A DNA stretch of 64,000 nt, from the sequence record NC_070998.1, one strand, 5' to 3'. This document shows, one piece after another, positions 14,209-59,919 of the stretch. The translations under genes were made by a program, and so were the position numbers. The notes beneath the pieces were generated by a model, which had not been told where the DNA came from, made no database searches, and saw nothing but the letters and a program-made list of their open reading frames with translations. How positions within the stretch are numbered: position 1 is the stretch's first letter; each line of letters begins with the position of its first letter.

Positions 14209-15255
14209 ATGATAAATGTTTATTTCTCAGAATTACCTAAAACTTTAACTGAAATATTAGGGTTAAAGTACGATGGTACTATGTCTTATGAAGAACGCGT
14301 TCAGAAAAGATATGATTACATTAAAGAACAGTACGAACTAGATAACAAATATGAAGGATGGGATTACTTAGAGAATGTTAAATACGGTTTAAAGTTTGAT
14401 CATTTAATTACTTTTGAATATATGATATCTACTAAAGGTAGGATTTTAACTTTATTTATGCAAGAAGGAAGATATAAAGTACTTAGAGGAGATATTAGTA
14501 GGACTGGGTACAGTAACCAAACTATAACTATGGATAAATCTGGTTATAAGTGTTCGCGGCACCGATCCTTGTCTTCAACATTCATCCCTAAACCAAGTCA
14601 TTATAAACAAGGAATAAATCGTTTAGTAGTTAATCATAAAGATTTAATTAAGTTAAATAACCACTTTACTAATTTAGAATGGTGTACTAATCAGGAGAAT
14701 TTACGTCATCAAGTTATTGAGCATGGCAAGGTTAACGTTTATTTTAATCAAATATTTGAAGGTACGGTAGAAATAGATTGTAAATACAAAGGTGTTAAGT
14801 TTAAAGTATTTGGGGCGGAGGGGTTAGAAGAAATAGGACTTTACCGTGGATGTATTAATGAAATTTTCTCTGGTAGAAAGGAGCTTTCATTTGGTTGTAG
14901 TTGGAAGATAATAACTCAGGAAGAGGCTGATAAACTTCCAGATATTCCAGAATTCATTAAAGATAAGTTTATAAACAACATACCCTATACGGATATAAGA
15001 GTTAAACCTTTGAAAGGTACTGTTGTTAGGGACTGTGAATATAAAGGTTTAGAATTCGTAACTTATGGTAAACAAGAACTAGTGTCTTTAGGGTTTAATC
15101 AAGGTAATGTTTCAGTTTCTATCACAACCGGAAAGGTTACCCAGAGTTGTTTATGGGAATATATTTCCAGAGATGAGGCAGAATTATTACAAAGAGGATT
15201 AACTAAAGATCAACAGAAAGTTATTGTTACCAAGAGAGGACCTAATAAGAAGTAA
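14209..15255 (+). mobile_element. Free-standing HNH endonuclease with two C-terminal NUMOD1-like repeats
   Basis: VNHKDLIKLNNHFTNLEW; two ~62-aa GTV..DC.YKG...W..IS repeats; close paralog of 50898..51941. Confidence 0.88.
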
Positions 15256-22323: not shown

Positions 22324-22400
22324 TGGTGGGCCTGGTGCGATTTGAACGCACTACCTAAGCCTTATGAGGACTCAGCTCTGACCAAGTGAGCTACAGGCCC
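22324..22400 (-). tRNA. tRNA-CAT, probably Ile2 (lysidine) rather than Met
   Basis: Full cloverleaf, loop CTCATAA, encoded CCA; C4-G69 and C5-G68 match TilS/Ile determinants. Confidence 0.85.
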
Positions 22401-22420
22401 TTGATTTACAAAACTTTTAT

Positions 22421-22924
22421 CTATAGCTTGAGCGTGTATCCCATATTCCGACAAACTTTTCTGTACTCTTCAAGATTAAATACTCCATTACAATCCGTGT
22501 ATTTAATCAAAGTGTTCATAGGTAATCCGGTGATTTCACAAGCTATTCTACATGTGGGATAACGTTTACCGTTAACATTCCATCCGGTCTTTTTGCGTAG
22601 CTTTTTTAGAGCGGCGCGATGTTTTTCTTCTGAGTCCCACCAGTTATCTTTACTTGTCCCTTTCATAAGGTGTTCTGGATTACAACGCCTTCTATTATGA
22701 CATGTATGTCTAACCACTTCTTCTTTTGTTATTTCACCATTGAAGACTTTATATACAAACCTATGAACAGACTCATTCTTACCAAGAAACCCATTTGGAT
22801 GAAATTGACCATAACCACCGCTAAGAGATCTGGTCCATTCCCAACATTTGTTTTCTTGATTAATAAAAATATGTGGTTTGATTTTATCTTCAAAAATAGT
22901 AAACAGTTCTTGATTAATCGTCAT
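22421..22924 (-). mobile_element. HNH endonuclease within the tRNA cluster
   Basis: CWEW, GYG, VHR and HTCHNRRRCNPEHL motifs; ATG at 22924 after TGGTG SD (track start at 22942 is TTG). Confidence 0.85.
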
Positions 22925-22944
22925 TTTATCACCATTAATCAAAT

Positions 22945-22977
22945 AGGTCGGAGCTCTAACCGCTGAGCTAAAGACCC
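22945..22977 (-). pseudogene. 5' half of a tRNA (positions 1-33), truncated at the anticodon
   Basis: GGGTCTT TA GCTC AGCGGTTA GAGC T CCGAC CT then runs into the HNH leader; no matching 3' half seen. Confidence 0.8.
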
Positions 22978-42268: not shown

Positions 42269-42325
42269 TCTTTACTCCTCTACTCCTTAATTGGGGTAGA
42301 GGAGGTTATTTTATCCCTCCTATTT

Positions 42326-42345
42326 ATTTTTCAAACCTATATTAC
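42326..42345 (+). promoter_or_regulatory. Early promoter of HNH gene
   Basis: TTTTTCAAACCTATATTAC downstream of terminator 42275..42304. Confidence 0.78.
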
Positions 42346-42374
42346 TATAGTGTATAAATAAAAAGAGGTTTGAA

Positions 42375-44808: not shown

Positions 44809-46710
44809 ATGCAAGTTAACAACAACGAAAACAACGCTATGAACACTACCCTGGGTCTGGGTACTTCTTCTAACGGTTCTGGTTCTCCTCTGGCTGCGCT
44901 GTTTGGTAGCACCAACCTGATCACCTCCTCCCACTCCGCAACCGAAGTTGCTGATGTGATCAAGTACCTGCAAGAGAAAGTTAAAGAGCTGCTGGCCAAC
45001 ACCGCCCCTGAAATCCAGAAAGCAACTCTGCCGCGTTTCATAGAACGGCCGACCTCTGACATCACCCCGCATCTGCCCGCCATCGCAATGTACACCGTAC
45101 TGGGTACTAGCTGCTACGTTATGCCGATCCTGTTCTACAAAGCGGGTTTCACCGATGCCACCGATACCATCCAAATGGGTAACGAAGCTCCGCGTGGTTA
45201 TGCTAAAACTCCGACTTCCTTCATGACCAATGATGTAATGAAGAAGGTTAAGGAAAGCTTCAAATTGATCGACGGTAAAACCATGACCAACGTAGTGATT
45301 ACCGCACCGATGGTAATGAACCTGGAGCGTTATATCAAAGCTGGTATTACCGGCGAAGATATGGCCGCTAAAGTTGGTCACAAACTGCTCAAAGAGTGGC
45401 AGACCGGTATTACCAACATGGCTGCTCTGGAAACTCAGAAAGCTGGTGGTCAACTGCCCAACCCGTTTGCCGGTGGTAAACTGTTTGGTCAGCATGAAGC
45501 TGCTCTGGCTCGTGTTGAGTCTGTTCATCAACTGGTTGTTGATGGTCTGCCTGTTCCGTATAACCTGGCTGTTAAGCTGGCAACTGCCAACAAGAACAAC
45601 ATGACCAACTACGGTAACAACACCGCCAAGACCATCCTGACAACTTACCTGAACGTCCAACTGGAAACCATGTCTCCTGGTCAGTTCAACGATGTTCGTG
45701 CTCGTAACCCCGGTCGTCCTTGCGGTCCGATCGTTCCGGTTGTTGTAGCTGGCATGTCCAACCCTGGTGAAACCCTGCATCACAACAACTCCCTGATGAC
45801 CCAACTGCTCGGTCTGTTCGCAAGTCTGGCAGCTAACGCACCGGTGTTCTTCTCCGAAGCGTTCCGTGGTCAACAGGTTGGTAACCGTGGTAACCTGGGC
45901 GTGTTCAACAACTACATGGCTTCTATTCTGGGTCCTGTGTACGGTGCTGATCACAACCTCACCAACAAGAACATCACCAACATCGCAGTAACCAATGACT
46001 GGATCCAGCGTTATGTTGCTCCCCAAGCAGTATACGCAATCGATCTGATCGGTTATGTAGATGAAACCAGTAACAACGACTTCTGGTTCGGTATCACTTC
46101 TGGTGACAAGTCCTCTACCTACGTTCGTTCCATGATCTCCCTGTGTGATCTGCTGACCGGCGGTAAGTTCTCTGCTCTGGCTAAAGAGAACACTGAGAAA
46201 GGTGCAAACCGTGACAAGTCCAAAGAGTGGGCGTTTGGTGATGCTATCATGCATCGTACCAACATCATCCGTCCTTACGGTATCGCCAAGAAAGGTAATG
46301 CTTGGTTTGATCTGGGTGAAGTCGATGGTATGTTCCTGCGTCAGCCCGAGTACTACGGTACCAATGAAGTAGCAATTAATGAGTACAACGCCCTGCTGCA
46401 AGGTAGCATGGGTAACATTGATACTCGTATCCGTCAGTACAACATCCTGAACCGTCTGCAGGCGATGTTCAACAACGATGTGATCGTTGAAGGTTGGAGC
46501 CTGCGTTATGTATTTAACCAATCCTTCTTCAACACCCTGGCTCAAGCAATGTCTGCTGCTGGTACTCTGTCCGTATCCGGTAACAACGCTGCCGCTAACT
46601 GGACCATGCACGTTCAGAACGAAATCCTGAACATGACCATGGGTGCTAGCCTGTCTAACGCTCCGGTCACTCAGAACGTAATGAACAACGTGATGTACAC
46701 CCAGTTCTAA
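44809..46710 (+). CDS. chmA: Chimallin, phage nucleus shell protein
   Basis: 633 aa, strongest codon bias in the window, early promoter, directly upstream of nvRNAP beta-prime as in Chimalliviridae. Confidence 0.85.
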   Translation: MQVNNNENNAMNTTLGLGTSSNGSGSPLAALFGSTNLITSSHSATEVADVIKYLQEKVKELLANTAPEIQKATLPRFIERPTSDITPHLPAIAMYTVLGTSCYVMPILFYKAGFTDATDTIQMGNEAPRGYAKTPTSFMTNDVMKKVKESFKLIDGKTMTNVVITAPMVMNLERYIKAGITGEDMAAKVGHKLLKEWQTGITNMAALETQKAGGQLPNPFAGGKLFGQHEAALARVESVHQLVVDGLPVPYNLAVKLATANKNNMTNYGNNTAKTILTTYLNVQLETMSPGQFNDVRARNPGRPCGPIVPVVVAGMSNPGETLHHNNSLMTQLLGLFASLAANAPVFFSEAFRGQQVGNRGNLGVFNNYMASILGPVYGADHNLTNKNITNIAVTNDWIQRYVAPQAVYAIDLIGYVDETSNNDFWFGITSGDKSSTYVRSMISLCDLLTGGKFSALAKENTEKGANRDKSKEWAFGDAIMHRTNIIRPYGIAKKGNAWFDLGEVDGMFLRQPEYYGTNEVAINEYNALLQGSMGNIDTRIRQYNILNRLQAMFNNDVIVEGWSLRYVFNQSFFNTLAQAMSAAGTLSVSGNNAAANWTMHVQNEILNMTMGASLSNAPVTQNVMNNVMYTQF

Positions 46711-46796: not shown

Positions 46797-48191
46797 ATGT
46801 CAACTTTAGCGAATGTACTTGAGCAGTATCAAATACAACATCTTCTTCCAACCACTCTATTTGATAAAATTATTGAAGAGTCAGGTTATACACCAGAAGG
46901 TGATGACGAAAGCTTTTACCAGCCTCTTTATCCAGACATTGAAGATTTTAATTATCGGCATGATACTACTACAGTTCATCCGATCTATCTGAATGATTTC
47001 GATTTTAATATAGAAGAAGATCGAGAAAAGATTACTGCTCTACTACGTACCGAATATGAAGGAAACAATTTCGATACAGTCGCGAGCTGCACTTGTAAGA
47101 AACATCGGACTAATGCGTACCTTGGTACAAGTTTCGTTTGTGACAGTTGTGGAGATCCTGTCACTAAACCACTTGGCGAGAAAATCGAAACCAAAGTCTG
47201 GCTTCGCACTCCTGCTAATGTGTCAGGTTTTATTAATCCTACTATTGCGGAAGTGTTCTTTCGTAAACTTAACACCAAAACTCCTAAGGTAAATTTGATG
47301 GAGTATTGGATTAACAAAGAGTTTAGAAATGAAAAGCGTTTTAGAGACCCAAGTCATAGTGCGTTTAAAATAGCTTGTAAACTAGAAGCTTTCCGTTTGT
47401 CGCTCAATATCGAATTTGGATATAACGAGTTCGTTGACAATATGGATTTGATTATCAGATCAGCTATTGAACACGACACTAATGGTGTTCTGGATCTTAC
47501 TGAAAAGAACCGTGAACATTATGCGATGTTCTGGGAAAAATTCAAATCAAGAGCTGTAGCTCAACATCTCCCTTTGCCTAACAAGGTAACCTCTATTGTC
47601 GAGTCTGACCAACGAGATAAATATGTTAATAAGGAGAAGAGTGATCTTGAAAAGATCTTTTACACCATTGCTGATATGTATCCAGCTTATGACTATCGTT
47701 CTACTGAGAACGCAGAGATCATGGGGAAGATCTTTACTAAACTCAAAAACATGATGTTGGATGTAACTGAATCTATCCTCTTCAAGAAGAAAGGGATGAT
47801 TCGATATCACGCTGGTGCTGGTAAGCTACCAATGACTGGTCGTTCTATTATCACAGGTGAATCTGGTGTTTGTCGCTCAGACACTATCATCGTTCCCTGG
47901 TTGTACGGAATAACTTGTTTGGATAAACACCTAACTAACTGGCTGTATCGGAAAGGTTATACCCCGCTGAAAGTAAAGGAGATTATACGTTCTGCTGCTA
48001 ACTTTAAACATCCTGTTGTAGAGGAGTTCTTTAACTGGGTAGAAAGTAATCGATACGCCATTGCAACGTGCGGTCGAAATCCTTCTATTCAGTATTTGTC
48101 AGCACGTGGTTTCTTTGTACAGTTTAACCGCGATGTAGAAGATAAATCCATCCGGATTCCGATCACTACAGTTAAGGAATTTAATGCCGAT
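46797..48191 (+). CDS. nvRNAP beta-prime N-terminal subunit (phiKZ gp55-like), exon 1
   Basis: CTC/CDSC zinc finger, RNPS motif; ends FNAD at GAT, a U-ending 5' splice site. Confidence 0.9.
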
Positions 48192-48665
48192 CGAAATGTA
48201 TTTAGCATACATGTGGGAAAATAACTTAAACTATTTTCTCCAGTTAAATACACTCAGTCCCCCTAGGGTGAAAGTCCTAGTGAGGTACCTTTTGAATTGC
48301 TGGAAAGTCCACAAAAGTTACTTACCTAAGCTTAATTAGAAATGATTAAGTTAGTGGTGTCGAAAGACAGAAACAACAAGTAACCTGTCCTACGCTAAGA
48401 AATAATGCTAAGGGATACTAACAAGGGATAATCAGCCTCCGAGGATCTAAGTATATTCGTGATGAATAGATAGGATTCAGGTTCAACGACTGTCCCGTGG
48501 CTGGGAGTAGGGAAATCAGATTTCCTGAAGTATTAGGCACCTAACCGTGTAAAGACGTAGGTGATGGTATAGTCTGCTCCTCTAGTAATGTAGAGGCGGG
48601 TGTCTTAGCGCACCGGTGTTATTATGATAGCCAAAATGGCGAACGGTAATAACACGGACATAAGG
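48192..48665 (+). mobile_element. Group I intron 1 (474 nt, no ORF)
   Basis: P AATTGCTGGAAA, Q ATAATCAGC, R GTTCAACGACTG, S GTATAGTC; P3 GGTACCT/AGGCACC; terminal G at 48665. Confidence 0.88.
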
Positions 48666-48674
48666 TTCGACGGT
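48666..48674 (+). CDS. nvRNAP beta-prime exon 2 (9-nt micro-exon, Phe-Asp-Gly)
   Basis: TTCGACGGT is preceded by G and ends in T; joining exons restores NADFDGD. Confidence 0.85.
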
Positions 48675-49826
48675 AAACTTTTGCTGTCATTAAACCCTTT
48701 CAATTGCTGGAAACCCCTTAGAGCTTAATCAACTAAAGCGGAATTGGAAACAATAAACGTAAATGTTTGAAAATGATTAAGATTGGGCAATCAGCAGCGA
48801 AGCTTCTAAATACATTTGAGATGAATGGATACGAAGAACGTTCAACGACTACGTTCCCAGAAGCCTGGGATGATGAGGGCGCTTTAAAGCGAAGATATAG
48901 TCTCTACCGGTATGAAAGTATCGGATGGAAATCCCTGACCGGAATTCCACGTGATCTAGCGAATCACGAAGAGTCCTAAAAAGACGGAGAACAATAATGT
49001 TGTTAATACCTGAATCCGATGGGTTCTTTGTTACTGAAACTGGTCGAGTATACGACAAAGACGGCAAAGAACGAAATTACTACACCAACGGAGACGGGTA
49101 TATTACCGCCTCGATCTCTATTGGTGGTAAGTGGCAAACATTTGGGGTACAGCGGTTGGTCATGTTAGCCTATGAACCGATTGATAATCCAGATGACTAC
49201 ACGGTCAATCATATTGACCTTGATAAAACCAATAACAACAAACCAAATTTAGAATGGCTGACAACAAAGTGGAACAATATCCATTCTGCTATTTTTAACA
49301 GTAAAGGTAAACGCCCTGTTGTCAGATGTTTGAATGGTGATGAAGAAATGTTCATCAAAGATGTGATGACGCTTCCCACAATTCTTGGTGTCGATATCCA
49401 GCAAATATGGTTTGCAATTAAGAACTCAACCCAGATAAATGGATGGTCCATTTCACCGATCCCTTATGACGATAAAGAAATTATCCGATTATTGAACAGT
49501 TCCATTGGAACTGTTGATGGACCAGTGAGACCAGTTAGATGTTTAGACATCGAAACTGGAATTTGGAAAAATTACAAGAGTATGAAAGAAATGGCTAATG
49601 AATTTGGTGTTGGTATAACACACATCAGACATCGCTTAGCTACCTTTGAACGTCCTCGTATATTTCTCCAACGTTACATTATTCTGGATGATGGAGTTTC
49701 AGATGAGTTCATCACCCCAGAACTAATCGCCATGTTAAAGATGACTTGGACGAAGAAAAGAAAGCGTTGGTCAGAACGCTGTAATTAGGACTCGATAAAA
49801 ACCACTTATGTGGAACAATGTGATAG
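48675..49826 (+). mobile_element. Group I intron 2 (1152 nt) carrying an HNH gene
   Basis: P1 GACGGT/GCTGTC with U-G; P AATTGCTGGAAA, Q AATCAGCAG, R GTTCAACGACTA, S AAGATATAGTC; terminal G at 49826. Confidence 0.9.
48997..49788 (+). CDS. Intron-encoded HNH homing endonuclease
   Basis: GDGY, VQRLV and VNHIDLDKTNNNKPNLEW motifs; GGAG SD; lies 3' of the catalytic core. Confidence 0.88.
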   Translation: MLLIPESDGFFVTETGRVYDKDGKERNYYTNGDGYITASISIGGKWQTFGVQRLVMLAYEPIDNPDDYTVNHIDLDKTNNNKPNLEWLTTKWNNIHSAIFNSKGKRPVVRCLNGDEEMFIKDVMTLPTILGVDIQQIWFAIKNSTQINGWSISPIPYDDKEIIRLLNSSIGTVDGPVRPVRCLDIETGIWKNYKSMKEMANEFGVGITHIRHRLATFERPRIFLQRYIILDDGVSDEFITPELIAMLKMTWTKKRKRWSERCN

Positions 49827-50012
49827 GATAACATGTATCTATTCTTTATCCCCGATATGGTGGGTAAAGTAAATGCGTATAGTAACTGGGGGCACCATCA
49901 AATGGTCGATCCAAACAAGCCGTTTAAAACAAGTAGATTTGTTGCAGCGACACGAACTAATCTCTTAAACATAAATAGCGTACTTCTTAATACACCGATT
50001 GAGGAGGACTAA
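49827..50012 (+). CDS. nvRNAP beta-prime exon 3
   Basis: DNMYLFFIPD...EED*, 61 aa; spliced protein is 529 aa. Confidence 0.85.
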   Translation, partial: DNMYLFFIPDMVGKVNAYSNWGHHQMVDPNKPFKTSRFVAATRTNLLNINSVLLNTPIEED

Positions 50013-50013
50013 T

Positions 50014-50664
50014 TTGAACGTAACATCAGCTTTCAATAGAGGTTGTGGTGGAAGCTTGAGTAGTGAAGCTGCCCAAGTCTACGATAGCTTCATGGGAAAT
50101 ATGTTGCAGAAATACGAAAACTTAACTGGATGGTTGAGCGAAACTGTAGATTCTGTAAAGAAAGCTCATAGCAACTTCATGTCTTCTAAAATGTGGGAGT
50201 TCTCTAACCGTATTGGTAGAACAGGACACTACGTAGGAAGATTCGAAATCGGTTATCTGTCAGAAGTTCATTTCCAACAACAAGCCACTGGGTTTATGCG
50301 TAATTACATTATGGCTAATCCTAACATGATGGCGTTGTATGAAACTGAACAAGTTTCTGGATATGGTGGAGATTTCTCTGACTTGTGTTCTGGTATTGGT
50401 CATGGTAACTATTACTATGATAAAGCGATGGACGGATTAGTTACTCAAAATGAGAGTGATCAATACTTCTATCGTACTTACCACAATTCAATGGACGAAG
50501 GTACACATCTGAGTCCTAGAGAACGTTTCGATATTCAACGTACCTGGCGTGCAACCGACCACCATATTAAGAACTTGTTTGACTCGTCTAACATTGCGGG
50601 TGGAAACATTCTTACTTTGGAAGAAGTTGAAGAACGTCGTAAAGCAGAAGAAGACAAAGAGTAA
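50014..50664 (+). CDS. Conserved Chimalliviridae core protein (probably phiKZ gp59-like)
   Basis: TTG at 50014 after GAGGAG; FMRNYIMANP, GY and YDKAMDG motifs; synteny. Confidence 0.6.
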   Translation: MNVTSAFNRGCGGSLSSEAAQVYDSFMGNMLQKYENLTGWLSETVDSVKKAHSNFMSSKMWEFSNRIGRTGHYVGRFEIGYLSEVHFQQQATGFMRNYIMANPNMMALYETEQVSGYGGDFSDLCSGIGHGNYYYDKAMDGLVTQNESDQYFYRTYHNSMDEGTHLSPRERFDIQRTWRATDHHIKNLFDSSNIAGGNILTLEEVEERRKAEEDKE

Positions 50665-50737
50665 TTAAACTGAACTACCTGAGGAGTTATCCTTGGGTAG
50701 TTCTTTTAACTGCTTTAAAAATTAAGGAAATAGACAA

Positions 50738-50860
50738 ATGAAGCAAGTTCACGAAGATGATATTTGTGTTGTAACACGATCTGAAGTTGATGTTAATCGT
50801 TACTATGGAAGTGGACGTCGTAGTAAACTACCTCTGCCGATGCTTAGCGTAAAGGTTTAA
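50738..50860 (+). pseudogene. Truncated 5' copy (40 aa) of the Tad1-like gene at 51975
   Basis: MKQVHEDDICVVTRSEVDVNRYYG versus MKEVHKDNICVVTRSEVDVNRYYG; same AAGGAAATAGACAA leader. Confidence 0.88.
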
Positions 50861-50897
50861 AATCAGTTATTTAGTTAACAATATTAGAGAGTTAAAT

Positions 50898-51941
50898 ATG
50901 ATAAATGTTTATTTCTCAGAATTACCTAAAACTTTAACTGAAATATTGGGGTTAAAGTACGATGAAACAATGTCTTATGAAGAACGAGTTCAGAAAAGAT
51001 ATGATTATATTAAACAGCAGTATGAACTAGATAACAAATATGAGGGATGGGATTACCTTGAACATATCAAAGGTAGAGCATTATTTAATCATTTCATTAC
51101 CTTTGATTATTTAATTTCTACCAAAGGTAGAATTTTAACTTTATTTGTACGAAAAAATAAATATAAAGTTTTAACTGGTGATGTGGGAACTGAAGGTTAC
51201 AAAAGACAGGCTTTACACTTAAATAACGTGGTTTATAAATTCACTAATCATCGTGCCGTCGGATCCACTTTCGTTCCTAAACAGAACCACTACAAAGAAA
51301 GTTTAAATATTTTAGAAGTAAACCATAAAGACTCGATTAAGTTAAATAACAATTTCTTTAATTTGGAATGGTGTACCGGGAAAGAAAATGTACAACATAA
51401 TCACATCGAGCGATCAGATAAAAACATTTATTTTAATCAAAACTTCGAAGCGACGGTAGAAATAGATTGTAAATACAAAGGTGTTAAGTTCAAAGTTTTT
51501 GGTGCGGAAGGTCTTAATGAAATTGGGCTGGTTGCCAATCGGGTCCGTAAAGTTCTAATTGGTTCAACGACAGTTTCCTTCGGTTGTAGTTGGAAAATAA
51601 TAACTCAAGAAGAAGCTGAACAACTTCCTGATATTCCAGAGTTTATTAAGAATAAATTTCTTAATGATAGAAACTATATGAATCATCGTATTAAACCTTT
51701 AAAAGGTACTGTTGTTAAAGATTGTAAATATCAGGGACTGGAATTTGTCATTTACGGTAAACAGGAATTGCGAGGTTTTGGATTTAGCCAAGGCGGGATC
51801 TCAAAAATAACGTCAACCGGGATTTCACACCAAGGATGTCTTTTTGAATATATTTCCAGAGATGAAGCTGAGTTATTACCCAGAGGGTTAACTAAAGAAC
51901 AGCAAAAAGTTATTGTAATTAAACGTGACGCTACTGAATGA
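50898..51941 (+). mobile_element. Free-standing HNH endonuclease, close paralog of 14209..15255
   Basis: First ~50 nt identical to 14209; VNHKDSIKLNNNFFNLEW; two C-terminal repeats. Confidence 0.88.
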
Positions 51942-51974
51942 ATATGTTTCATATTCTATAAAGGAAATAGACAA

Positions 51975-52301
51975 ATGAAAGAAGTACATAAAGACAATAT
52001 TTGTGTTGTAACACGTTCAGAAGTTGATGTCAATCGTTATTATGGTCGTGGTCGCAATAATAATCTTCCATTTTGCATGCTTAGGTATCAGGACTCAAGT
52101 GATCCCAATAAAGAAAATGGTTTCACTTTGGAAGGTGTAATCGCTTCTGCTATTGATCGTTTGGAACACTTTAATACTGGACAGTTTAAATGTGATCACA
52201 ATGATCGTGCTTTGGAACATCTTCGTGGTGCATTGAAAGAACTCAATGACCGAGTAGAAGATCGTAAAGCGCGAGATGTTTACAACACCGACAAAGCTTA
52301 G
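51975..52301 (+). CDS. tad1: Tad1-like nucleotide-signal sponge (anti-Thoeris/anti-CBASS)
   Basis: DRL..F..G.F.C..N..AL.H...AL..LN.RVEDR..R.V..T.K matches the recalled Tad1 C-terminal core. Confidence 0.75.
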   Translation: MKEVHKDNICVVTRSEVDVNRYYGRGRNNNLPFCMLRYQDSSDPNKENGFTLEGVIASAIDRLEHFNTGQFKCDHNDRALEHLRGALKELNDRVEDRKARDVYNTDKA

Positions 52302-52309
52302 GAGTTAAC

Positions 52310-52798
52310 ATGGGTGCTGGATATGCTTCTTTCCAGATGGATTTAAAAAGCGCTGTAGCGATTAATGCAGCAATTGAAAAAGAAGAGATTAAGTGTGCTG
52401 ATGACTTTCACGAGAAGTTAGCAACTAAGATTAATATTGTAGCTAATGATCTTCACGCAACACTGATGTATGACAAACGAGATCCCGACATTAGTCCAGG
52501 GATTAATCGTAAATCATATAAAGCTAAGGTAATCAATGTAGAGAAGCTAGGTGTACCAGGTAAGCAATTCTACGCCCTAGTCCTTACCCTTGAGTCGGAC
52601 GAGATCCAGAAACGTTTTAAAGAGCTCCTAGAGCTTGGGTTTGAGCATTCCTTCCCAGAGCTTAAACTCCATTGTAGTTTGTACTATGGAGATGGGACTG
52701 AACTGTGTTATAAGTTCATGAAACGCTTATTCGATGAAGGTAAACTCCCAGAATACATTACACTTTGTAATGAGAACTGGAATACTTGTAAAGACTAA
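52310..52798 (+). CDS. acb1: Acb1-like 2H phosphodiesterase (T4 gp57B-like)
   Basis: LHATLMY and LHCSLYY (two HxT/S motifs), ALVLTLES, LELGFEHSF; 162 aa. Confidence 0.72.
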   Translation: MGAGYASFQMDLKSAVAINAAIEKEEIKCADDFHEKLATKINIVANDLHATLMYDKRDPDISPGINRKSYKAKVINVEKLGVPGKQFYALVLTLESDEIQKRFKELLELGFEHSFPELKLHCSLYYGDGTELCYKFMKRLFDEGKLPEYITLCNENWNTCKD

Positions 52799-52815
52799 CC
52801 TTTAAGATCCATAGA

Positions 52816-52844
52816 TTTTCAAACCTATATTACCTAAGTGATAA
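52816..52844 (+). promoter_or_regulatory. Early promoter identical to the chimallin promoter
   Basis: TTTTCAAACCTATATTACCTAAGTGATAA. Confidence 0.8.
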
Positions 52845-52892
52845 ATAGAATATGTATTTTTAACTCTACAGGTATAGATAAGGAATATTCTC

Positions 52893-53036
52893 ATGACTTC
52901 TGCTCAATTAGTCGGTATTGCTTTCTTCGCCCCTATGATGGTAGTTACCTTTTCTGTCTTGGGGTTCTACTACTATAACCAGTGGAAAGAAAATAAAGCT
53001 AAGAAAGGCCCGATGGCTCGTTTTAATAAGCGTTAA
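52893..53036 (+). CDS. 47-aa single-pass membrane protein (not in ORF track)
   Basis: MTSAQLVGIAFFAPMMVVTFSVLGFYYYNQWKENKAKKGPMARFNKR; TAAGGA SD; own promoter and terminator (53043..53076). Confidence 0.78.
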   Translation: MTSAQLVGIAFFAPMMVVTFSVLGFYYYNQWKENKAKKGPMARFNKR

Positions 53037-53118
53037 TTGAAGTGTTGCTACTCTCCCAATTGGGAGAGTAGCAATATTAAGAATGATAAATTTTTTGTTT
53101 AAATTTAAGGAGTAATGT

Positions 53119-53532
53119 ATGCCAAAGGGTGTAGTTGCTACCATGGATACTTTAGGTTTTGTTAAAGAACCTACTGTAAAGATTGACCGACTCATTGCTT
53201 ACTGGTTTGCAAACCGCATTGATCAATCTATTATCCTCACTGGTATTTATAGTTATCAATATGTTGTTGCAAGACATCAGAACGATTTCCAAATTGATAA
53301 TTTTATTAAAGATATGGAAGAAAGTTTACGTTCCTATCTTTTAGAGTGTTTCACAGGTGTCGAAGTGGTGGTAAGATCACCAGATTACGAGCCGGTTAAA
53401 AAGATGTTTACTTTAGCAGTTTCAGGACAAGTAGAAGAAGACGGTAAGCTGTATGATTTAGCAACGTCAGTTTCTGTTAATGGTAAGACATTCGAATTAA
53501 TTCAAAGAGGAAGGAAAGAATATGCAAGGTAA
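53119..53532 (+). CDS. Conserved core hypothetical protein
   Basis: 137 aa, AAGGAG SD, TMDTLGFV..P..KID motif. Confidence 0.68.
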   Translation: MPKGVVATMDTLGFVKEPTVKIDRLIAYWFANRIDQSIILTGIYSYQYVVARHQNDFQIDNFIKDMEESLRSYLLECFTGVEVVVRSPDYEPVKKMFTLAVSGQVEEDGKLYDLATSVSVNGKTFELIQRGRKEYAR

Positions 53533-54334
53533 AGAGGTTGCAGGTTTTGAAGGGGTTGATAAATTCGCTCACGGTGATTTGTTCGAATTCCTAAGTAAGT
53601 CCTTTGCTTATACAGAAGTGGCTGGACAACGTGTTATTCAGACCCCGGACGGTTTATTTGTAGAACACGTGTTGATGGAAGAAGAGTACTTCGTAGAGAA
53701 CTGGCTGACCCAATTCGCTATTGGACACGCCGGTGATAAGAACTACTTCGATATGGAGACTTGGAACCAACTTACCGATAACTTTACCAAAGGTGTAATT
53801 GTTATCAATGAGCAACGTCATCCAGTTCTGATCATTCGCAAGTTCACCGAAATGGTGCTTCCTGAAGACCTAATGGAGAAACTAGCTTTTTGCAGTAACT
53901 ATGCTTCTAAGGCCAAATTTGTTACTGACGAAGCCGAAAAGACCGCTCTGATCAAACAGTTTGCTGAACAAGTCAATGCCATCACTAACTATGCTGGAGT
54001 AGACGAAGATTCTCTAACTAGTTTGATTCCTCCCGCTTTCTACGATAAACACAATGTACATCCTCTCACAATGAAGCAATTGATTTACATTCGTGATACG
54101 TATAAAGTGGCTGGACAATCTATCGATCCTGATGGTGATATCTTTAAACGTCTTGAAACCATTATTACTAGGTTTAATAAAGGTGAAAAGATCAACGAGT
54201 CTGATAAGAAGTTTGTACTGGAAATTACCCAAAATGAATTTCTTTTTGACTACGAAGACCATTCGGTAGAAGAACCAATTTCAATCGAAAAAACACCGTC
54301 AGAACCTGAAGAATTTAATCCACTTGCGGATTAA
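53522..54334 (+). CDS. Conserved core hypothetical protein
   Basis: 270 aa, overlap coupling. Confidence 0.68.
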   Translation: MQGKEVAGFEGVDKFAHGDLFEFLSKSFAYTEVAGQRVIQTPDGLFVEHVLMEEEYFVENWLTQFAIGHAGDKNYFDMETWNQLTDNFTKGVIVINEQRHPVLIIRKFTEMVLPEDLMEKLAFCSNYASKAKFVTDEAEKTALIKQFAEQVNAITNYAGVDEDSLTSLIPPAFYDKHNVHPLTMKQLIYIRDTYKVAGQSIDPDGDIFKRLETIITRFNKGEKINESDKKFVLEITQNEFLFDYEDHSVEEPISIEKTPSEPEEFNPLAD

Positions 54335-54366
54335 ACTAATGAGGGTGTTTACGTCTAGGAACAGAC

Positions 54367-55500
54367 ATGGAAAAAAGATTTAATGCATTATGGTGTTCTG
54401 ATCAACATACGTTGCACCCTCATACCTCCACACAACACATTTTGGATAACATGAGTCGTTTCTATTACAAAGATAACAACTTAAGTGATATCGATCTAAG
54501 TGTTTGGGGTGGGGACTTCTTCCATGACTTAGCGCCAGCTAACGACAGTAACTTGTTGTTAGTGCACCGCTGGGTTAAAAAGTATTTACATAGTTGCCAT
54601 GAACGTAAAGTCCATGTAAGAATATTAGAAGGAACATCTTCCCACGATTGGGGACAACCAGAGACTTTAGAAGTACTAAAACCAAAAGGATCTCCTTATA
54701 TCAAATACATCAATACGTTGAGCATTGAGTTTATTCCAGAACTTGATATCAATGTAATGTATGTTCCTGATAACTTTGGTAAAACCTCCACCGAAGATAT
54801 TTATGATCAAGCAGTTGAACTATTAGCTAATCATAACTTGACCCAAGTGGATTTTATCTTCTTACATGGTGGGTTTGTATTTCAACTTCCTCCAGTTGCC
54901 AATAAGCACGGTACATTGTACGATGAATTGAAATGGAGTAAGTTAGCTAAACACGCTATCTTCTCAGGTCATATTCATAAACCTGGACAGAAATACAATA
55001 TCTATTGTTCCGGTTCTTTTGATCGTATAGCACATGGTGAAATGCATCCAAAGGGTGCTTACAGATTCTCGTTCAATAAAGAACACTTCAGCGCCTCGTT
55101 CTACGAGAATATCTATGCCCAGATATATGACACGATCCAGATAACACCGGAAACTAATGTTAAACAACTTACCAAGATCATTGATAGCTATTTAAGGAAA
55201 TCACCGCCACCTAAAACACGTATTAAAGTTAAAGGTGGTTTGTCAGCAGTAACGGTAGCTTTAATAAATGAGTACAAAGATCAATATCCGATGTACCATT
55301 TTGAAACTGATAATGTCAAGGAAGAGAATATTGATATAGATGCTACTCTGTATTCTCCAGAAGACTATAAAGCCATCACGTTGACTAAAGATAATCTTAA
55401 AAGTAATTTGTTTAATTTCATGGAACCAACTATCGGTCAGAACGATGACATAGATAAAGCGTACCTTGAACAGTTATTAGACGAGGTAATGAATGGTTAA
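54367..55500 (+). CDS. SbcD/Mre11-like metallophosphoesterase nuclease
   Basis: SDQH, GGDFF, GTSSHD, HG and GHIH motifs. Confidence 0.87.
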   Translation: MEKRFNALWCSDQHTLHPHTSTQHILDNMSRFYYKDNNLSDIDLSVWGGDFFHDLAPANDSNLLLVHRWVKKYLHSCHERKVHVRILEGTSSHDWGQPETLEVLKPKGSPYIKYINTLSIEFIPELDINVMYVPDNFGKTSTEDIYDQAVELLANHNLTQVDFIFLHGGFVFQLPPVANKHGTLYDELKWSKLAKHAIFSGHIHKPGQKYNIYCSGSFDRIAHGEMHPKGAYRFSFNKEHFSASFYENIYAQIYDTIQITPETNVKQLTKIIDSYLRKSPPPKTRIKVKGGLSAVTVALINEYKDQYPMYHFETDNVKEENIDIDATLYSPEDYKAITLTKDNLKSNLFNFMEPTIGQNDDIDKAYLEQLLDEVMNG

Positions 55501-56305
55501 CCGCACACTAGGTACTGTACCGATAAGTGTCGGTACTGCAATGGCCATAGAAGCTCTCCAGAGCGCTCCTATGCACAGATACCAAACACTCCTCGTCAAT
55601 CTACGTACTGTGGTGAGAAACGCAAGAGAGGCGTTTGAGGAGCTTCCTAGCGAAACTGAACTTTTTAATGCAGCTAAAGATGATGTGGTGGGGATTGCGA
55701 ATTATATTGCTGAACTTAAGTTGAAAACACTACTTGACATTAAGTTCTATTATCCTAGTTATCAAGCCCTACCAAGACTCTTTCCATTAGCTAAATTAAA
55801 AGAACAGGATCCCAGTAAGCTAGTTAATCCAAAAGAAGAGAACAGAAAGAAAAAGATCATTCTTGATAATGGTGCACTAAAACGTCTTATTAAAGAGTTT
55901 GATAAGTTTGTTTCCCAAGTGGATTCATCTATTCCTCAGTTCTCAGGAGATGGGTTAATCATTACTCACCACCCTGTTGATCTAGTAACAACAGAAAGTT
56001 ACCACAGATTGCATCTATTAGAGTCACACACTGGATCGATAAAAGGTTACGTTCAGTTTTACACTAAACTAACTGGAGGGAAAGAGTTAACTAATATCCC
56101 ATTAAACAAACTGACCATTCAGATCTTTGGTGATAATGCTGTTAACTTCATGTCCCAATCAATCTCAGTGAAAAACGAAATCAAAGCTCTGGCTAAATCG
56201 GTACCATGGAGTACTGCATCCACGCCAAGCTTTATCGCTAGTACAATTAGACGGATGCCGAGCTCTGCGCCAGAACGCGACATTCTACTCAAAATGATTA
56301 AGTAA
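55493..56305 (+). CDS. Conserved core protein (phiKZ gp66-like)
   Basis: 270 aa, PISVGT, NLRT..RN and LLESHTG motifs; synteny. Confidence 0.62.
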   Translation: MVNRTLGTVPISVGTAMAIEALQSAPMHRYQTLLVNLRTVVRNAREAFEELPSETELFNAAKDDVVGIANYIAELKLKTLLDIKFYYPSYQALPRLFPLAKLKEQDPSKLVNPKEENRKKKIILDNGALKRLIKEFDKFVSQVDSSIPQFSGDGLIITHHPVDLVTTESYHRLHLLESHTGSIKGYVQFYTKLTGGKELTNIPLNKLTIQIFGDNAVNFMSQSISVKNEIKALAKSVPWSTASTPSFIASTIRRMPSSAPERDILLKMIK

Positions 56306-56318
56306 AAGGAATATCAAT

Positions 56319-56354
56319 ATGTCTCAACAACAAGCTTTCCAACGTCGTCCATAA
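56319..56354 (+). pseudogene. Truncated 5' copy (11 aa) of the ChmC-like gene at 57454
   Basis: MSQQQAFQRRP* with AAGGA SD versus MSQQQTFQRRPQLL. Confidence 0.85.
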
Positions 56355-56418
56355 TTTTAGCGCTCTAAAAAATTTAGAACATATATCATCATTTAGAAAT
56401 GTTGTAATGGAGTTCTAA

Positions 56419-57435
56419 ATGTGTGAAATAAAATTAATATCAGATATTCTTAATCTATCCTTAGCTAAGGAAGATCATGAAGAAACTGTACAAAAACGTT
56501 GGGATTATATTCAAGAGCAATTAGAGAAAGATCCTAATTGGGTGGGTTATGACCACGCCGAATACCATCACGGTAGGGTTGATCTCTTTATAAACTTTAA
56601 TGGATGTGTAATTTCAACCAATGGAGAAGTGTTTAACAACACCGGGGTATTGAATAAAGTTTACACTAATAATTGTAAGTATAAATTTACAACTTTAAAA
56701 AATAAAGAAAAATCAAGTAGCTACTTTATACATAGATTGTTGGCCTCAACATTTTTACCTAGAAAAAATGATCTGGTTTCTAAACCTTTCCATAGATTGC
56801 AAGTGAACCATAAGGACGGAGTTAAAGCCAATAATATTTTATTTAATCTTGAATGGTGCACTAGTAAAGAGAATATTATTCACGCGTTCGATAAAGGTTT
56901 GTGCAAAGGTATTTCTGGGTCGGAAAACTCAAGAACTATACCTCTTTTGGCAACAGTGGTAATGATCGGACCTTTCAAAGGAAAGCAGTTTGTTTTAGTT
57001 GGTAAGCAAGAGTTTATAAATCATGGGTTTCACCAAGGTGGTGCGCATAGATGTTATAACAAAGATCTAGAAACTTCTAATGGATGCACTTGGGTTGGTA
57101 TCGATCCTGATAAGATATCGGACTACCCAAGAACACCGCCAGAAGGATACTTGGATTATTACCGCGAGAACTATCTCCTTTCCATGCCAACTTCTATACC
57201 AATAGTAGGAACCATAGAAAGAGGTCCACATGCTGGATACACTTTCTGCTTAATAGGTAGAAAGGAAATAAAAGCTGCCGGTTTTATCGACTCTCATGTA
57301 AGAGAAGCTGGACATAAAAACGGTATGCATAAAGGTTGTCGATGGAAGGTTATATCTAAAGAAGAAGTTGGCCATTACCAAAGAACCTTACCAAAAGAAA
57401 TTTTTAACACTATTCCAAAATACAACGAAAAGTAA
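56419..57435 (+). mobile_element. Free-standing HNH endonuclease, same family
   Basis: VQKRWDYI, IHRLLASTF, VNHKDGVKANNILFNLEW, two C-terminal repeats. Confidence 0.88.
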
Positions 57436-57453
57436 TTTATTAAGGAAAAAAAT

Positions 57454-58191
57454 ATGTCACAACAACAAACATTTCAAAGACGTCCTCAACTACTTGCCAA
57501 TGACTATCGTTACCCGGCTCCAATGTCCCGTGAACCTGTAGAGGGTGCTAAGTACCCTGCGCGTTGGACTTGGGAACAAGGTCTGGATGGTAAGATCTAT
57601 TTTAAAGTTAACGACGGGGTATTCGGTAAAGACGACCGTAACGCCAAAATGAAAGAAGTCGAAATGTCTGCCATGGATCGACTGTCCCTGTTCGAACTAA
57701 TGAAAGATGCTTGTGATAACGCCAACTTCACCAAAACCCAGTACCACGTCAAGAAAGTTACTTTCGGTGCTGGCGGTCGTTTGAACGAACATCCGTCTAC
57801 TCTTGGCATCTTTACTGTCATGCGTAGCCAAGAAGGACGAATCTCGGTAGGTTATACCAAAGGTTCCTACAAAGTTATGTTTGAATTCAAATCACCATTT
57901 GATTCAATGATTATGGTATCTAAAGACGGTGAACCTTGTGAAGACCCAGGTTTGATGAGTCGTGTATATTGCAAGGCGTTTATCAATTTCTACGGCCCAT
58001 ACCTTAACGAGCTAGAGATTGCCGGTTATAAGCCGCGCGAGAGCAAGAACGCTGGTGGTAATAACAACGCTGGTGGTAACAGTGGTTGGAACGGCAATGG
58101 TGGTAATAACTGGAATGGTAACGGTGGCGGTAACAATAGTTCACAACGTAAACCAGATCCCACTTCTTTTGATGATGACTTGGACTTTTAA
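57454..58191 (+). CDS. ChmC-like nucleus-associated nucleic-acid-binding protein (phiKZ gp67 position)
   Basis: 245 aa with G/N-rich disordered tail and acidic FDDDLDF end, directly upstream of the gp68-like gene. Confidence 0.68.
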   Translation: MSQQQTFQRRPQLLANDYRYPAPMSREPVEGAKYPARWTWEQGLDGKIYFKVNDGVFGKDDRNAKMKEVEMSAMDRLSLFELMKDACDNANFTKTQYHVKKVTFGAGGRLNEHPSTLGIFTVMRSQEGRISVGYTKGSYKVMFEFKSPFDSMIMVSKDGEPCEDPGLMSRVYCKAFINFYGPYLNELEIAGYKPRESKNAGGNNNAGGNSGWNGNGGNNWNGNGGGNNSSQRKPDPTSFDDDLDF

Positions 58192-58259
58192 GAGTAACTT
58201 TTAAAACATTTAAAGAGAGAAGGCTTTAAGCCTTCTCTCTATTATATCTATTTTTACCG

Positions 58260-58286
58260 TCCTATATTTTTTCAGATAGATATTAT
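58260..58286 (+). promoter_or_regulatory. Variant early promoter
   Basis: CCTATATTTTTTCAGATAGATATTAT after terminator 58214..58240. Confidence 0.6.
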
Positions 58287-58317
58287 TTAAGTGTTATTCT
58301 AGGGGAGTGTTTAAAAA

Positions 58318-59919
58318 ATGCGATATAGCACCGTACTTTCTGGGAAACGACGGATTGATTCTGTTATCGTTTCTCACAATAATGAACAGATTGAATTTAA
58401 GGGAACACAAACGGTTTGCGGTGGCGATGCTGATCAAGAGTTGTTCGAATTCATGAACATCTTCTTTGAAGGTTGTCGTGAGAGTACTATGGATCAATTG
58501 TGGAATTTGTTTAAAGAAGGTAAACGAATTCTCCAACCTGGTTATTTCGAAGAAGCTGAAACTCCAGAACTATCGGAACTTCGTGAACGTAGTTTGGATT
58601 ATCAGTTCCTAATCGATAAACTTGGCCCTATTGTCAAGCGTATGTACGAGTTGGTTACACCCAATGAAATTGCTTACGCAGCTCAAGTAACAGGTCGTAC
58701 GGTAGCTCCTAAAGACCTGATGCGTATGGCAGCTATGGGGGACTATCCAGAAGAGACTACAATTGATAATGACAAGTATGCTGAGTTAGTTAAACTTGCT
58801 TTCACAGCTCAACTTTGCTTCCCTCTTATCAACCAGTTGTTAGACCAGATCAACGAAGTAACTGGTAAAGATTATCAGTACGCTGTAGTGGGTAGTATGA
58901 TTTCTCAGATCCCTAGTATCGTAGAGATACCTGGTTGGAAGATCATGGATACCTATATCCGTGCAAGTTGTGCTCGTAAAGATAGTAAGCGGGAAAATAC
59001 CGACGTGGTATCTGAAGAACGATATGTTGACTATATCGTATTCGAGGGACTGTTTAGTAAACTCTCTTTGTCATTTATCCCGAGTCAACTCAAAGACAAA
59101 AACTTGTCCAAAGAGTTAAACTCATTAGTAGAAGGAAAAATCCGTAAAGAACAATCTACAAAGTTTACAAGGTTCTCCGAAAGTAAACCAGGTAGCGATG
59201 ATCAATCCATTCCAGAAAGTTATCGTATCGCTCAAACAGTAAATGGTTCTGATGAAGAAGCTATGGCAGAGTTCTTCTCATTTGGTATGTTTGATGAAGA
59301 AGATAAACCTCGTCATAAAGATATCTTTAAATACCAAGCAAAAGCTCTTGGAATTAAGGCCGAAAAGACCGTGGAGAAGTTGTTTCATAATCTTCCAACT
59401 GTTTGGGATTTTCGTTTTACCAACATTCAGAATCAATTACTCCAGTTAGCGTTTATTGATGATATTAACTATTATCTTTATCCTGCTATGGATTATCGGC
59501 AGCTAACCGCTGCAATGTGTTTGGCGCAAGTTAAACTATTTGAACAAGGTTATGAACATCTTGCCCAACTAGTCCGTGCTATGCGTTCTAATGCTGTCCC
59601 TATTACTTACATGGGAGATGAATTCAAACTCTCTACCAAAGAGCGAGAGGATCTAATCGATCTGTGTTATATCTATGTGGGTCAATCCACTGCTAGTACA
59701 GATAACATGTTAGTGATGTCGGTACAATCCTTCCTAGATGAGTTAGCGGCCTCTGGGTGGGAATCTAATATCGAACCAGGATTATTGGGTAACCAGAAGT
59801 TCCTTGATGCAATGTCACCCGGTGATATGTATCCCATTGATCTAGTACCAGAAATTAAACGTGAGTTACTTGCGTTGATTACCCAAACCCATAGTGTAGA
59901 AAAAGAAAACGAGGAATAA
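58318..59919 (+). CDS. nvRNAP sigma-like subunit (phiKZ gp68-like)
   Basis: 533 aa; size and position between ChmC-like and PicA-like genes. Confidence 0.68.
   Translation: MRYSTVLSGKRRIDSVIVSHNNEQIEFKGTQTVCGGDADQELFEFMNIFFEGCRESTMDQLWNLFKEGKRILQPGYFEEAETPELSELRERSLDYQFLIDKLGPIVKRMYELVTPNEIAYAAQVTGRTVAPKDLMRMAAMGDYPEETTIDNDKYAELVKLAFTAQLCFPLINQLLDQINEVTGKDYQYAVVGSMISQIPSIVEIPGWKIMDTYIRASCARKDSKRENTDVVSEERYVDYIVFEGLFSKLSLSFIPSQLKDKNLSKELNSLVEGKIRKEQSTKFTRFSESKPGSDDQSIPESYRIAQTVNGSDEEAMAEFFSFGMFDEEDKPRHKDIFKYQAKALGIKAEKTVEKLFHNLPTVWDFRFTNIQNQLLQLAFIDDINYYLYPAMDYRQLTAAMCLAQVKLFEQGYEHLAQLVRAMRSNAVPITYMGDEFKLSTKEREDLIDLCYIYVGQSTASTDNMLVMSVQSFLDELAASGWESNIEPGLLGNQKFLDAMSPGDMYPIDLVPEIKRELLALITQTHSVEKENEE

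Follow-up and report, generated by a model that had tools for sequence, protein, structure and literature searches.

Why should a single phage gene possess two starts, set apart by a gene for an endonuclease? The question is raised by the predicted chmC orthologue of Aeromonas phage PS1 (genus Ferozepurvirus; 237,367 bp; MN032614.2 / NC_070998.1), of which bases 1–64000, hereafter designated the window, were studied in record coordinates; the rest of the PS1 genome was also assembled, for a survey of its HNH genes. The record gives Aeromonas hydrophila ATCC 7966 as isolation host. PS1 encodes a 'nuclear shell protein' (44809–46710) together with phiKZ-type RNA polymerase subunits and is thus a chimallivirus-like, nucleus-forming jumbo phage. 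At the locus in question, a short stub that reads as the beginning of chmC is followed by a gene for an HNH nuclease and then by the functional chmC, which opens with a similar but distinct start. We conclude, with a probability of roughly 80%, that a free-standing, intron-less HNH homing cassette invaded the coding start of chmC and keeps the gene functional by means of a substitute start; the cut site and homing itself we infer from comparison of the alleles.

The start of chmC is found twice around an HNH gene

The features of the locus lie on the plus strand. The left flank of the insertion is formed by a conserved gene (55493–56305; phrog_3229, E 8.6e-72), the positional counterpart of phiKZ gp66, whose 93–94% nucleotide identity with HNH-free relatives holds right up to the stub. 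After a gap of 13 nt from its stop codon, and preceded by its own ribosome-binding site (RBS; AAGGA), the stub (56319–56354) begins with the ATG at 56319 and reads ATG TCT CAA CAA CAA GCT TTC CAA CGT CGT CCA TAA, that is, 11 codons of the resident chmC 5' end (MSQQQAFQRRP) and a stop codon. The inserted cassette of 1135 nt (56355–57489), delimited by alignments and by two-piece megablast matches in phages pAEv1810, AVP1, and ACP1, comprises a left-end spacer (56355–56418), the HNH gene (56419–57435; PS1 gp200, intact in PS1, 338 aa), a new RBS (AAGGA; 57436–57453) for the re-headed chmC, and a replacement head of 12 codons (MSQQQTFQRRPQ; 57454–57489), which was recognised by comparison with the stub and with a metagenomic relative (L075, see below) and is in frame with the resident body. 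The functional gene of 245 aa (57454–58191) opens at 57454 with ATG TCA CAA CAA CAA ACA TTT CAA AGA CGT CCT CAA.

Both start sequences had been quoted in the first-pass annotation of the window, and both are present as quoted. Local alignment of the 400 nt upstream with the 400 nt downstream of the HNH open reading frame (ORF) scored 20.0, against 13.0 for the best of 60 shuffles (z = 9.3). Stub and head are identical at 26 of their first 32 nt (28 of 36 over the whole head), and every one of the six substitutions in the first 32 nt is towards A or T in the head, with a single amino acid change, A6T. No terminator was found between the HNH gene and chmC, the sole terminator-like site in 55400–58400 being a hairpin 3' of chmC (58214–58240; terminator scan) at the end of the unit that holds the stub, the HNH gene, and chmC. 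Since no such site occurs from the upstream gene as far as 58214, the chmC transcript presumably runs through the HNH gene. A sigma-70 promoter scan gave nothing better than shuffles, chimallivirus promoters lying outside the coverage of that tool.

The stub is the native start and the head came with the element

To the first-pass annotation, the stub was the original start of the gene and the head a donation of the element, and the alleles of phages lacking the nuclease agree with this. The comparison set consisted of at least eight HNH-free relatives, namely, pAEv1810, AVP1, and ACP1 and the metagenomic chmC alleles L061–L065 (82–83% aa). In megablast comparisons, PS2, the sister phage of PS1 (96–99.8% identical), had the same insert and pAEv1810, AVP1, and ACP1 had none; in these three phages chmC begins 13–14 nt past the upstream gene with ATGTCTCAACAACAAGCTTTCCAACGTCG(C/T), which is the stub sequence. 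The stub is identical to the pAEv1810 chmC start at 31 of 32 positions and is syntenic with the upstream gene and spacer in all three. At the diagnostic codons, L061–L065 carry TCT or TCC, GCT, TTC, and CGT or CGC, and the head codons TCA, ACA, and AGA were found at these positions in none of the HNH-free alleles of the comparison set, TTT alone occurring, in ACP1. The first-pass annotation had named the presence of the downstream codons in such relatives as a refutation, and by this criterion its reading stands. Moreover, fusion of PS1 56319–56350 to 57486 onward gives 36 nt exactly as in the natural allele L064.

The codon usage of the two starts differs in the way that had been proposed, the stub resembling core genes and the head resembling HNH genes. 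Neither chmA nor the major capsid gene nor the chmC body contains AGA, which accounts for 46% of the Arg codons in the ten larger HNH genes of PS1; TCA and ACA are rare in core genes, and TCA, ACA, and TTT shift in the same way as AGA. Summed codon log-odds place the stub on the core-like side (+3.7 bits) and the head on the HNH-like side (−3.4 bits). When IMG/VR was scanned for exact copies of the head DNA, there was no match. We also considered the 12 nt after the head (CAACTACTTGCC) as imported DNA, for pAEv1810 differs there, and rejected this, as L061, L062, and L064 show it to be a natural resident allele.

Head and nuclease move together across chmC backgrounds

A search of a collection of 5.8 billion proteins found two relatives of the nuclease, P0001 (93%; contig L075) and P0003 (58%; contigs L076 and L077), and the order of stub, HNH gene, head, and chmC is the same in all three contigs. 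The L075 nuclease is 93% identical in amino acids to that of PS1, and its head is the PS1 head with TCA, ACA, TTT, and AGA; the head thus tracks the nuclease. Between PS1 and L075, nucleotide identity is 96.9% in the spacer, 87–98% by thirds of the HNH gene, and 94.4% in the head, and then 88, 86, 77, and 79% along the chmC body. The stub of L075, ATGTCTCAACAACCACAAGCTTTCCAACGCCGTCCTCAA/TTTTAG (...CCTCAA/TTTTAG, the slash marking the junction), is of the L061–L064 type, including an extra CCA codon. This places the junction directly behind codon 12 and shows that in PS1 a later change from TC to AT at 56351–56352 created the TAA. The chmC body of L075 is 92–97% identical to L061–L064, and that of PS1 88–92% identical to pAEv1810 and AVP1. 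Thus, one cassette, 94–97% identical in nucleotides between PS1 and L075, is found on two chmC backgrounds, with a locally matching stub in each.

The second HNH lineage (58% aa; L076 and L077) is inserted at this very site and is arranged alike, with a native-type stub, ATG...CGTCGT/GCCAAA..., and a different head, MSELQFKRRAPSILS. The backbone of these contigs is 98.6% identical to the HNH-free L065 to the last base of the stub, after which chmC is about 80% identical to every relative. The stubs end differently, in P (PS1), PQF (L075), and RAKNNIIL (L076), each followed by a stop codon. Collectively, at the level of the aligned sequences these comparisons show the layout, its direction, the linkage of head and nuclease, and their spread across backgrounds.

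The layout recurs at other genes and at a tRNA

PS1 has ten HNH genes of larger types and one small HNH gene among its tRNAs. In the same flank-duplication screen (400 nt upstream against 400 nt downstream of the HNH ORF, compared with shuffles), three of the ten were positive, the chmC site and two others with z = 7.8 to 61, and the remaining seven gave z below 2. As a control, 36 unrelated HNH loci from IMG/VR were screened and one was positive (L038), so that HNH flanks do not in general give this duplication signal.

The recurrence claimed in the first-pass annotation for a Tad1-like gene and a tRNA gene was found at both. At the Tad1-like locus (plus strand; flank duplication z = 61), the stub ORF (50738–50860) is followed by an insert of 1237 nt (50848–52084) that contributes an HNH gene (50898–51941), an RBS, and a new head to the gene at 51975–52301. 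PS2 is without this insert, and its gene, counted from the start, agrees with the PS1 stub at 96 of 96 positions, with the junction at a common ATGCTTAG. The new head shares 85 of 96 positions with the natural pAEv1810 allele, including GRGRNNNLPFCML, versus 75 of 96 with its own stub. The protein matched PDB 8KBH, 8KBG, and 7UAV (E 3.7e-5), the C-terminal part alone aligning (residues 45–106 of 108), and is probably of the Tad1 (Thoeris anti-defence 1) type. RefSeq lists the stub, of 40 codons, as a hypothetical protein (gp209). At the tRNA-Met locus (22324–22977, minus strand), a stub (22948–22977), the small HNH gene (22421–22924), and a complete but different tRNA-Met (22324–22400) occur together. 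AVP1 has tRNA-Arg-TTTTACA-tRNA-Met without HNH, and the PS1 stub, beside tRNA-Arg, is the first 30 nt of the AVP1 tRNA-Met.

A mirror case, in which the 3' end is replaced, lies outside the window at gp135 (PS1 127420–129300). PS2 and ACP1 have no HNH gene there, and their gene tail (...NLREKLADIIRPGK, stop codon, and terminator) corresponds to the copy downstream of the PS1 HNH gene (98.5% identical to PS2), while in the functional PS1 gp135 the 3' part, which has a terminator of its own, is of donor type (88.7% identity over about 700 nt); the HNH gene after it is frameshifted. In an unrelated 33-kb phage contig (L038:2860-3350; IMGVR_UViG_2974533776_000001), the stub, HNH gene, and re-headed gene are again in this order (MTNIFDKVSTAKELKESEDF... 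versus VTNIFEKVQTAKHLKEREDL...), and its relatives L041 and L044 have the HNH gene and lack the stub. An HNH gene specific to PS2 (PS2 167700–168746) is intergenic and without a coding stub; stubs are thus seen only where the insertion falls inside a gene or tRNA. These cases imply at least five independent origins of the stub layout. The heads look like donor alleles that move with the nuclease rather than sequences recoded from scratch, to judge from the partial match of the Tad1 head with the natural allele of another phage.

Alternative explanations

We regard as unlikely that the layout is a one-off accident, in which the HNH gene and a piece of a donor chmC were captured once, illegitimately, in the ancestor of PS1 and PS2, the stub being debris and the cassette immobile as a unit or no longer mobile. 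One-sided illegitimate repair of a break is documented in T4 (PMC2988022), the stub end is not conserved among PS1, L075, and L076, and the PS2 HNH gene is frameshifted, all of which would suit such an origin. However, the same cassette stands on two chmC backgrounds with stubs matching locally, a second nuclease lineage is found at this site in the same arrangement, and two recent insertions specific to PS1 and absent from PS2 both have stubs.

Somewhat less likely still is that about 36 nt of chmC were duplicated as a target site and that the downstream copy then gained immunising substitutions in place, with no import of a head. The stub and head peptides agree at 10 of 11 residues and the substitutions are nearly all synonymous, which fits immunity with preserved function. 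Against this, the head substitutions are common to PS1 and L075 despite chmC bodies of different lineages, the L076 head (MSELQFKRRAPSILS) differs at the protein level, the Tad1 head is closer to the pAEv1810 allele than to its own stub, and the mirror case brought about 700 nt of donor-type gene along with the HNH gene.

Splicing is the weakest alternative. An Rfam scan of 48500–58500 at E <= 1 gave no match in 50000–58500, which includes the chmC and Tad1 HNH genes; the same scan detected a group I intron (RF00028) at 48610–48924 on the plus strand (79.6 bits, E 2e-19), about 7.5 kb upstream, as an internal positive control, in keeping with the 'splice-free' strategy proposed in the first-pass annotation. 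That a cryptic self-splicing intron or another RNA-level bypass joins the stub to codon 13, the duplicated head being incidental, is very improbable: phages often have short unannotated N-terminal exons beside endonuclease genes (PMC10448857), a genuine group I intron accompanied by an HNH gene lies nearby, and stub-to-body splicing would yield an in-frame protein, but besides the absence of an Rfam match the head has its own RBS and ATG, the PS1 stub ends in an in-frame TAA made by substitutions, and the tRNA instance supplies a complete second tRNA.

The upstream group I intron itself is located between an RNA polymerase beta'-like gene (46797–48224) and the stretch 48997–50012, which begins with an HNH gene (48997–49788). 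At this site, the HNH-free relatives annotate a 90-aa ORF versus a 60-aa ORF in PS1 and PS2, and they retain 36 nt matching the intron 3' end. The arrangement resembles the RNA polymerase intron of PhiPA3 with gp210.

Identity of the invaded gene and of the nuclease

The identification of the invaded gene as ChmC-like, made from the letters alone in the first-pass annotation, is strengthened by synteny and profile comparison. The SbcD-gp66-gp67-gp68 block of phiKZ (gp65–gp68) matches the PS1 locus in synteny and lengths, and phiKZ gp67 is ChmC (PMC11077065). A profile of eight relatives aligned collinearly with phiKZ gp67 (hhalign probability 85%, E 6.3e-6), and the C-terminus of the 245-aa protein is N/G-rich and then acidic in the alignment, as described for ChmC (PMC11077065). 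The protein belongs to phrog_3284, with homologues in OBP, EL, and RisingSun. Pairwise BLAST against phiKZ gp67 was not significant, and a PDB sequence search with the 245-aa protein gave nothing meaningful. On synteny and profile comparison, the protein is thus assigned as the ChmC orthologue, and it is probably a Whirly-type RNA-binding protein of the phage nucleus. ChmC is reported to be abundant in PhiPA3 and needed for infection (PMC11077065). Among HNH-free Ferozepurvirus, chmC is an island of divergence (15–19% between pAEv1810 and ACP1, with 2–4% in the flanks and 0.8% in the next spacer), and codons 11–16, at the insertion point, are the most variable stretch of the N-terminus.

The 338-aa protein is predicted to be an I-HmuI-like HNH homing endonuclease. 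It matched phrog_59 (E 1.5e-25) and the I-HmuI structure (PDB 1U3E; E 1.2e-4), VNHKDG...NN...NLEW aligning to VDHKDG...NN...NLRW with the catalytic H-N-N/H residues aligned, and PF13392 (HNH_3) was found on several of its homologues. The gene has 35% G+C (29% at third codon positions) versus 45% (41%) in the chmC body. The spacer before it contains a hairpin (TTTAGAAC / GTTCTAAA) that spans the Shine–Dalgarno-to-AUG stretch of the HNH gene (−17.5 kcal/mol, z −2.4; second fold −10.9 kcal/mol, z −1.9), and an analogous hairpin lies over the HNH AUG in L076 (z −2.25). These folds hint that the hairpin may damp HNH translation, and damped translation is known for T4 nucleases (PMC2988022). In PS2, an additional A in the A6 run at 56762 divides the HNH gene into two annotated ORFs (PS2_0060 and PS2_0061), either through decay after fixation or through a homopolymer sequencing error; such a frameshift is expected late in the life cycle of a homing endonuclease. 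Tblastn against GenBank phages gave nothing above 40% identity besides PS1 and PS2, and an IMG/VR scan with the protein gave distant HNH-domain matches only. The closest other family members (P0004, P0005, and P0008) lie between genes of divergent or convergent orientation, and no gene continuing from the HNH gene is encoded on either side.

Other HNH genes showed further regularities. Those at 14209–15255 and PS2 167700–168746 are 78% identical and share the flanks ..GTAGAGTTACTTTTGTTAT.. upstream and ..TTTTATTGATTTTATG downstream, each standing directly past a terminator hairpin at unrelated loci, which suggests that this subfamily targets an intergenic regulatory motif. About 55 nt are nearly identical upstream of two HNH genes (42320–42374 and PS1 128125–128178; AAACCTATATTACTATAGTGTATAAATAAAAAGAGGTTT), with a related motif at the 14209 copy; the common stretch is a candidate cassette-borne promoter. 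PS2 82748–84513 apparently contains two tandem HNH-related ORFs versus one in PS1 (82826–83824), the PS2 copy being 83% identical and the site otherwise conserved.

A proposed mechanism for invasion and re-heading

In the proposed mechanism, the nuclease would nick or cut an HNH-free chmC near codons 10–13 in a co-infecting relative; I-HmuI and PhiPA3 gp210 are nickases (PMC11620839). Repair of the break would use the HNH-bearing genome as template, homology being provided on the left by the upstream gene and stub and on the right by the chmC body, so that the nuclease and the head would be transferred to the recipient, whose own start would stay behind as a new stub. The local character that all stubs display would thereby be accounted for. 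The carrier would be immune, as its recognition sequence would be split, the stub lacking the right half and the head differing at 4 of the 12 nt on the left side of the junction. Translation of ChmC would then begin at the new ATG, behind the new RBS, on a transcript reading through the HNH gene. Because the 5' end is the part replaced, the cassette must supply an RBS and a start codon as well.

The first origin would most likely have been a repair event that combined homology at one end with an illegitimate join at the other, with ordinary homing afterwards. In T4, homology on one side with a microhomology join on the other admits a mobile element, a laboratory outcome with engineered substrates (PMC2988022), and such a join appears the likeliest way in which the stub was first created. 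The PS1 layout differs from this laboratory result in being a recurrent natural architecture.

Several points weigh against our interpretation. A donor whose HNH gene is intergenic would, through standard homologous repair on both sides, leave no stub, and the origin step therefore needs an extra assumption. A6T and the rare codons in the head could affect the expression of ChmC. No HNH-free phage carrying either element head was found in IMG/VR, GenBank phages, or the large protein collection, and the metagenomic contigs are short (1.9–3.5 kb).

Discussion

The closest described architecture is that of the fungal mitochondrial mORFs, found in Allomyces macrogynus atp6 and in Glomus atp6, atp9, cox2, and nad3 (PMC3630166). 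As in the mORFs, an endonuclease ORF is accompanied by a diverged replacement for the gene end, the displaced native end persists as a second copy that matches close relatives, and no intron is needed (PMC3630166). PS1 gp135 has the mORF layout save for the nuclease family and the arrangement of reading frames. The mORFs, however, are organellar, encode LAGLIDADG or GIY-YIG nucleases, in most cases as in-frame fusions, and without exception replace the 3' end, whereas at PS1 chmC a phage HNH nuclease is a separate ORF upstream of the re-headed gene and the 5' end is replaced. The chmC, Tad1, and tRNA cases are thus the 5' counterpart of the mORF layout, in a phage.

The chmC cassette also resembles T4 SegF, SegG, and MobE, nuclease genes outside introns that are present or absent among relatives and presumably cut in an adjacent conserved gene (PMC2988022). 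For the free-standing T4 nucleases, co-conversion of flanking polymorphisms immunises the carrier (PMC2988022), and the gradient of divergence between PS1 and L075 is like that left by co-conversion. The T4 Seg and Mob genes, however, lie between intact genes without a duplicated fragment, whereas the PS1 insert is inside a coding sequence and the resident start is kept as a stub. PhiPA3 gp210 shares with the PS1 cassette the virus group, the I-HmuI-like family, and an essential target, in its case an RNA polymerase gene, and it nicks the intron-less allele of a competitor, giving a competitive advantage (PMC11620839). Gp210 is intron-encoded, whereas the PS1 cassette has no detectable ribozyme and a duplicated start instead.

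In the textbook view, a homing endonuclease enters conserved coding sequence only by way of intron or intein removal and otherwise stays between genes. The PS1 cassettes would add a third route in phages, namely, to bring a spare gene end. Incoming DNA also replaces the displaced part of a gene when integrating elements enter, such as phages in tRNA genes and e14 or phage 21 in icd, though by site-specific recombination and at 3' ends. In synthetic cleave-and-rescue or home-and-rescue drives, which are engineered, a Cas9 nuclease is combined with a recoded, cut-resistant copy of an essential target, and the design seen here resembles such drives of nuclease and recoded rescue. A literature search found no published description of the 5' re-heading layout in phages, its incomplete coverage making this weak evidence of novelty. 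Whether these loci represent a distinct class of phage homing without introns or inteins seems to us evenly balanced: in such a class, the element would carry a cut-resistant substitute for the end of the invaded gene, the recipient's end would become a fresh stub at every homing, and the substitute would co-evolve with the nuclease, and on the same reading the substitute could take the form of a 5' head bringing an RBS and ATG, of a 3' tail that has its own terminator, or of an entire tRNA.

In PS1, four targets are affected: the essential ChmC orthologue, a probable RNA-binding protein of the phage nucleus; a putative anti-Thoeris protein; a tRNA; and a membrane-like protein. For genome annotation, tiny 'hypothetical' ORFs upstream of HNH genes are to be read as displaced gene starts, and the stub boundary should mark the cut site of the nuclease, which would be predictable straight from the layout. 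Re-heading also offers an explanation for the divergence of chmC among phages otherwise 96–98% identical. An intron-borne HNH nuclease is already known as a weapon between co-infecting nucleus-forming phages, and the re-heading cassettes are candidates for the same role. If the proposed class is real, these elements would be a natural 'cleave-and-rescue' drive, by which nucleases enter essential (chmC) and anti-defence (Tad1) genes and tRNAs, cause the alleles there to be replaced, and harm relatives that infect the same cell.

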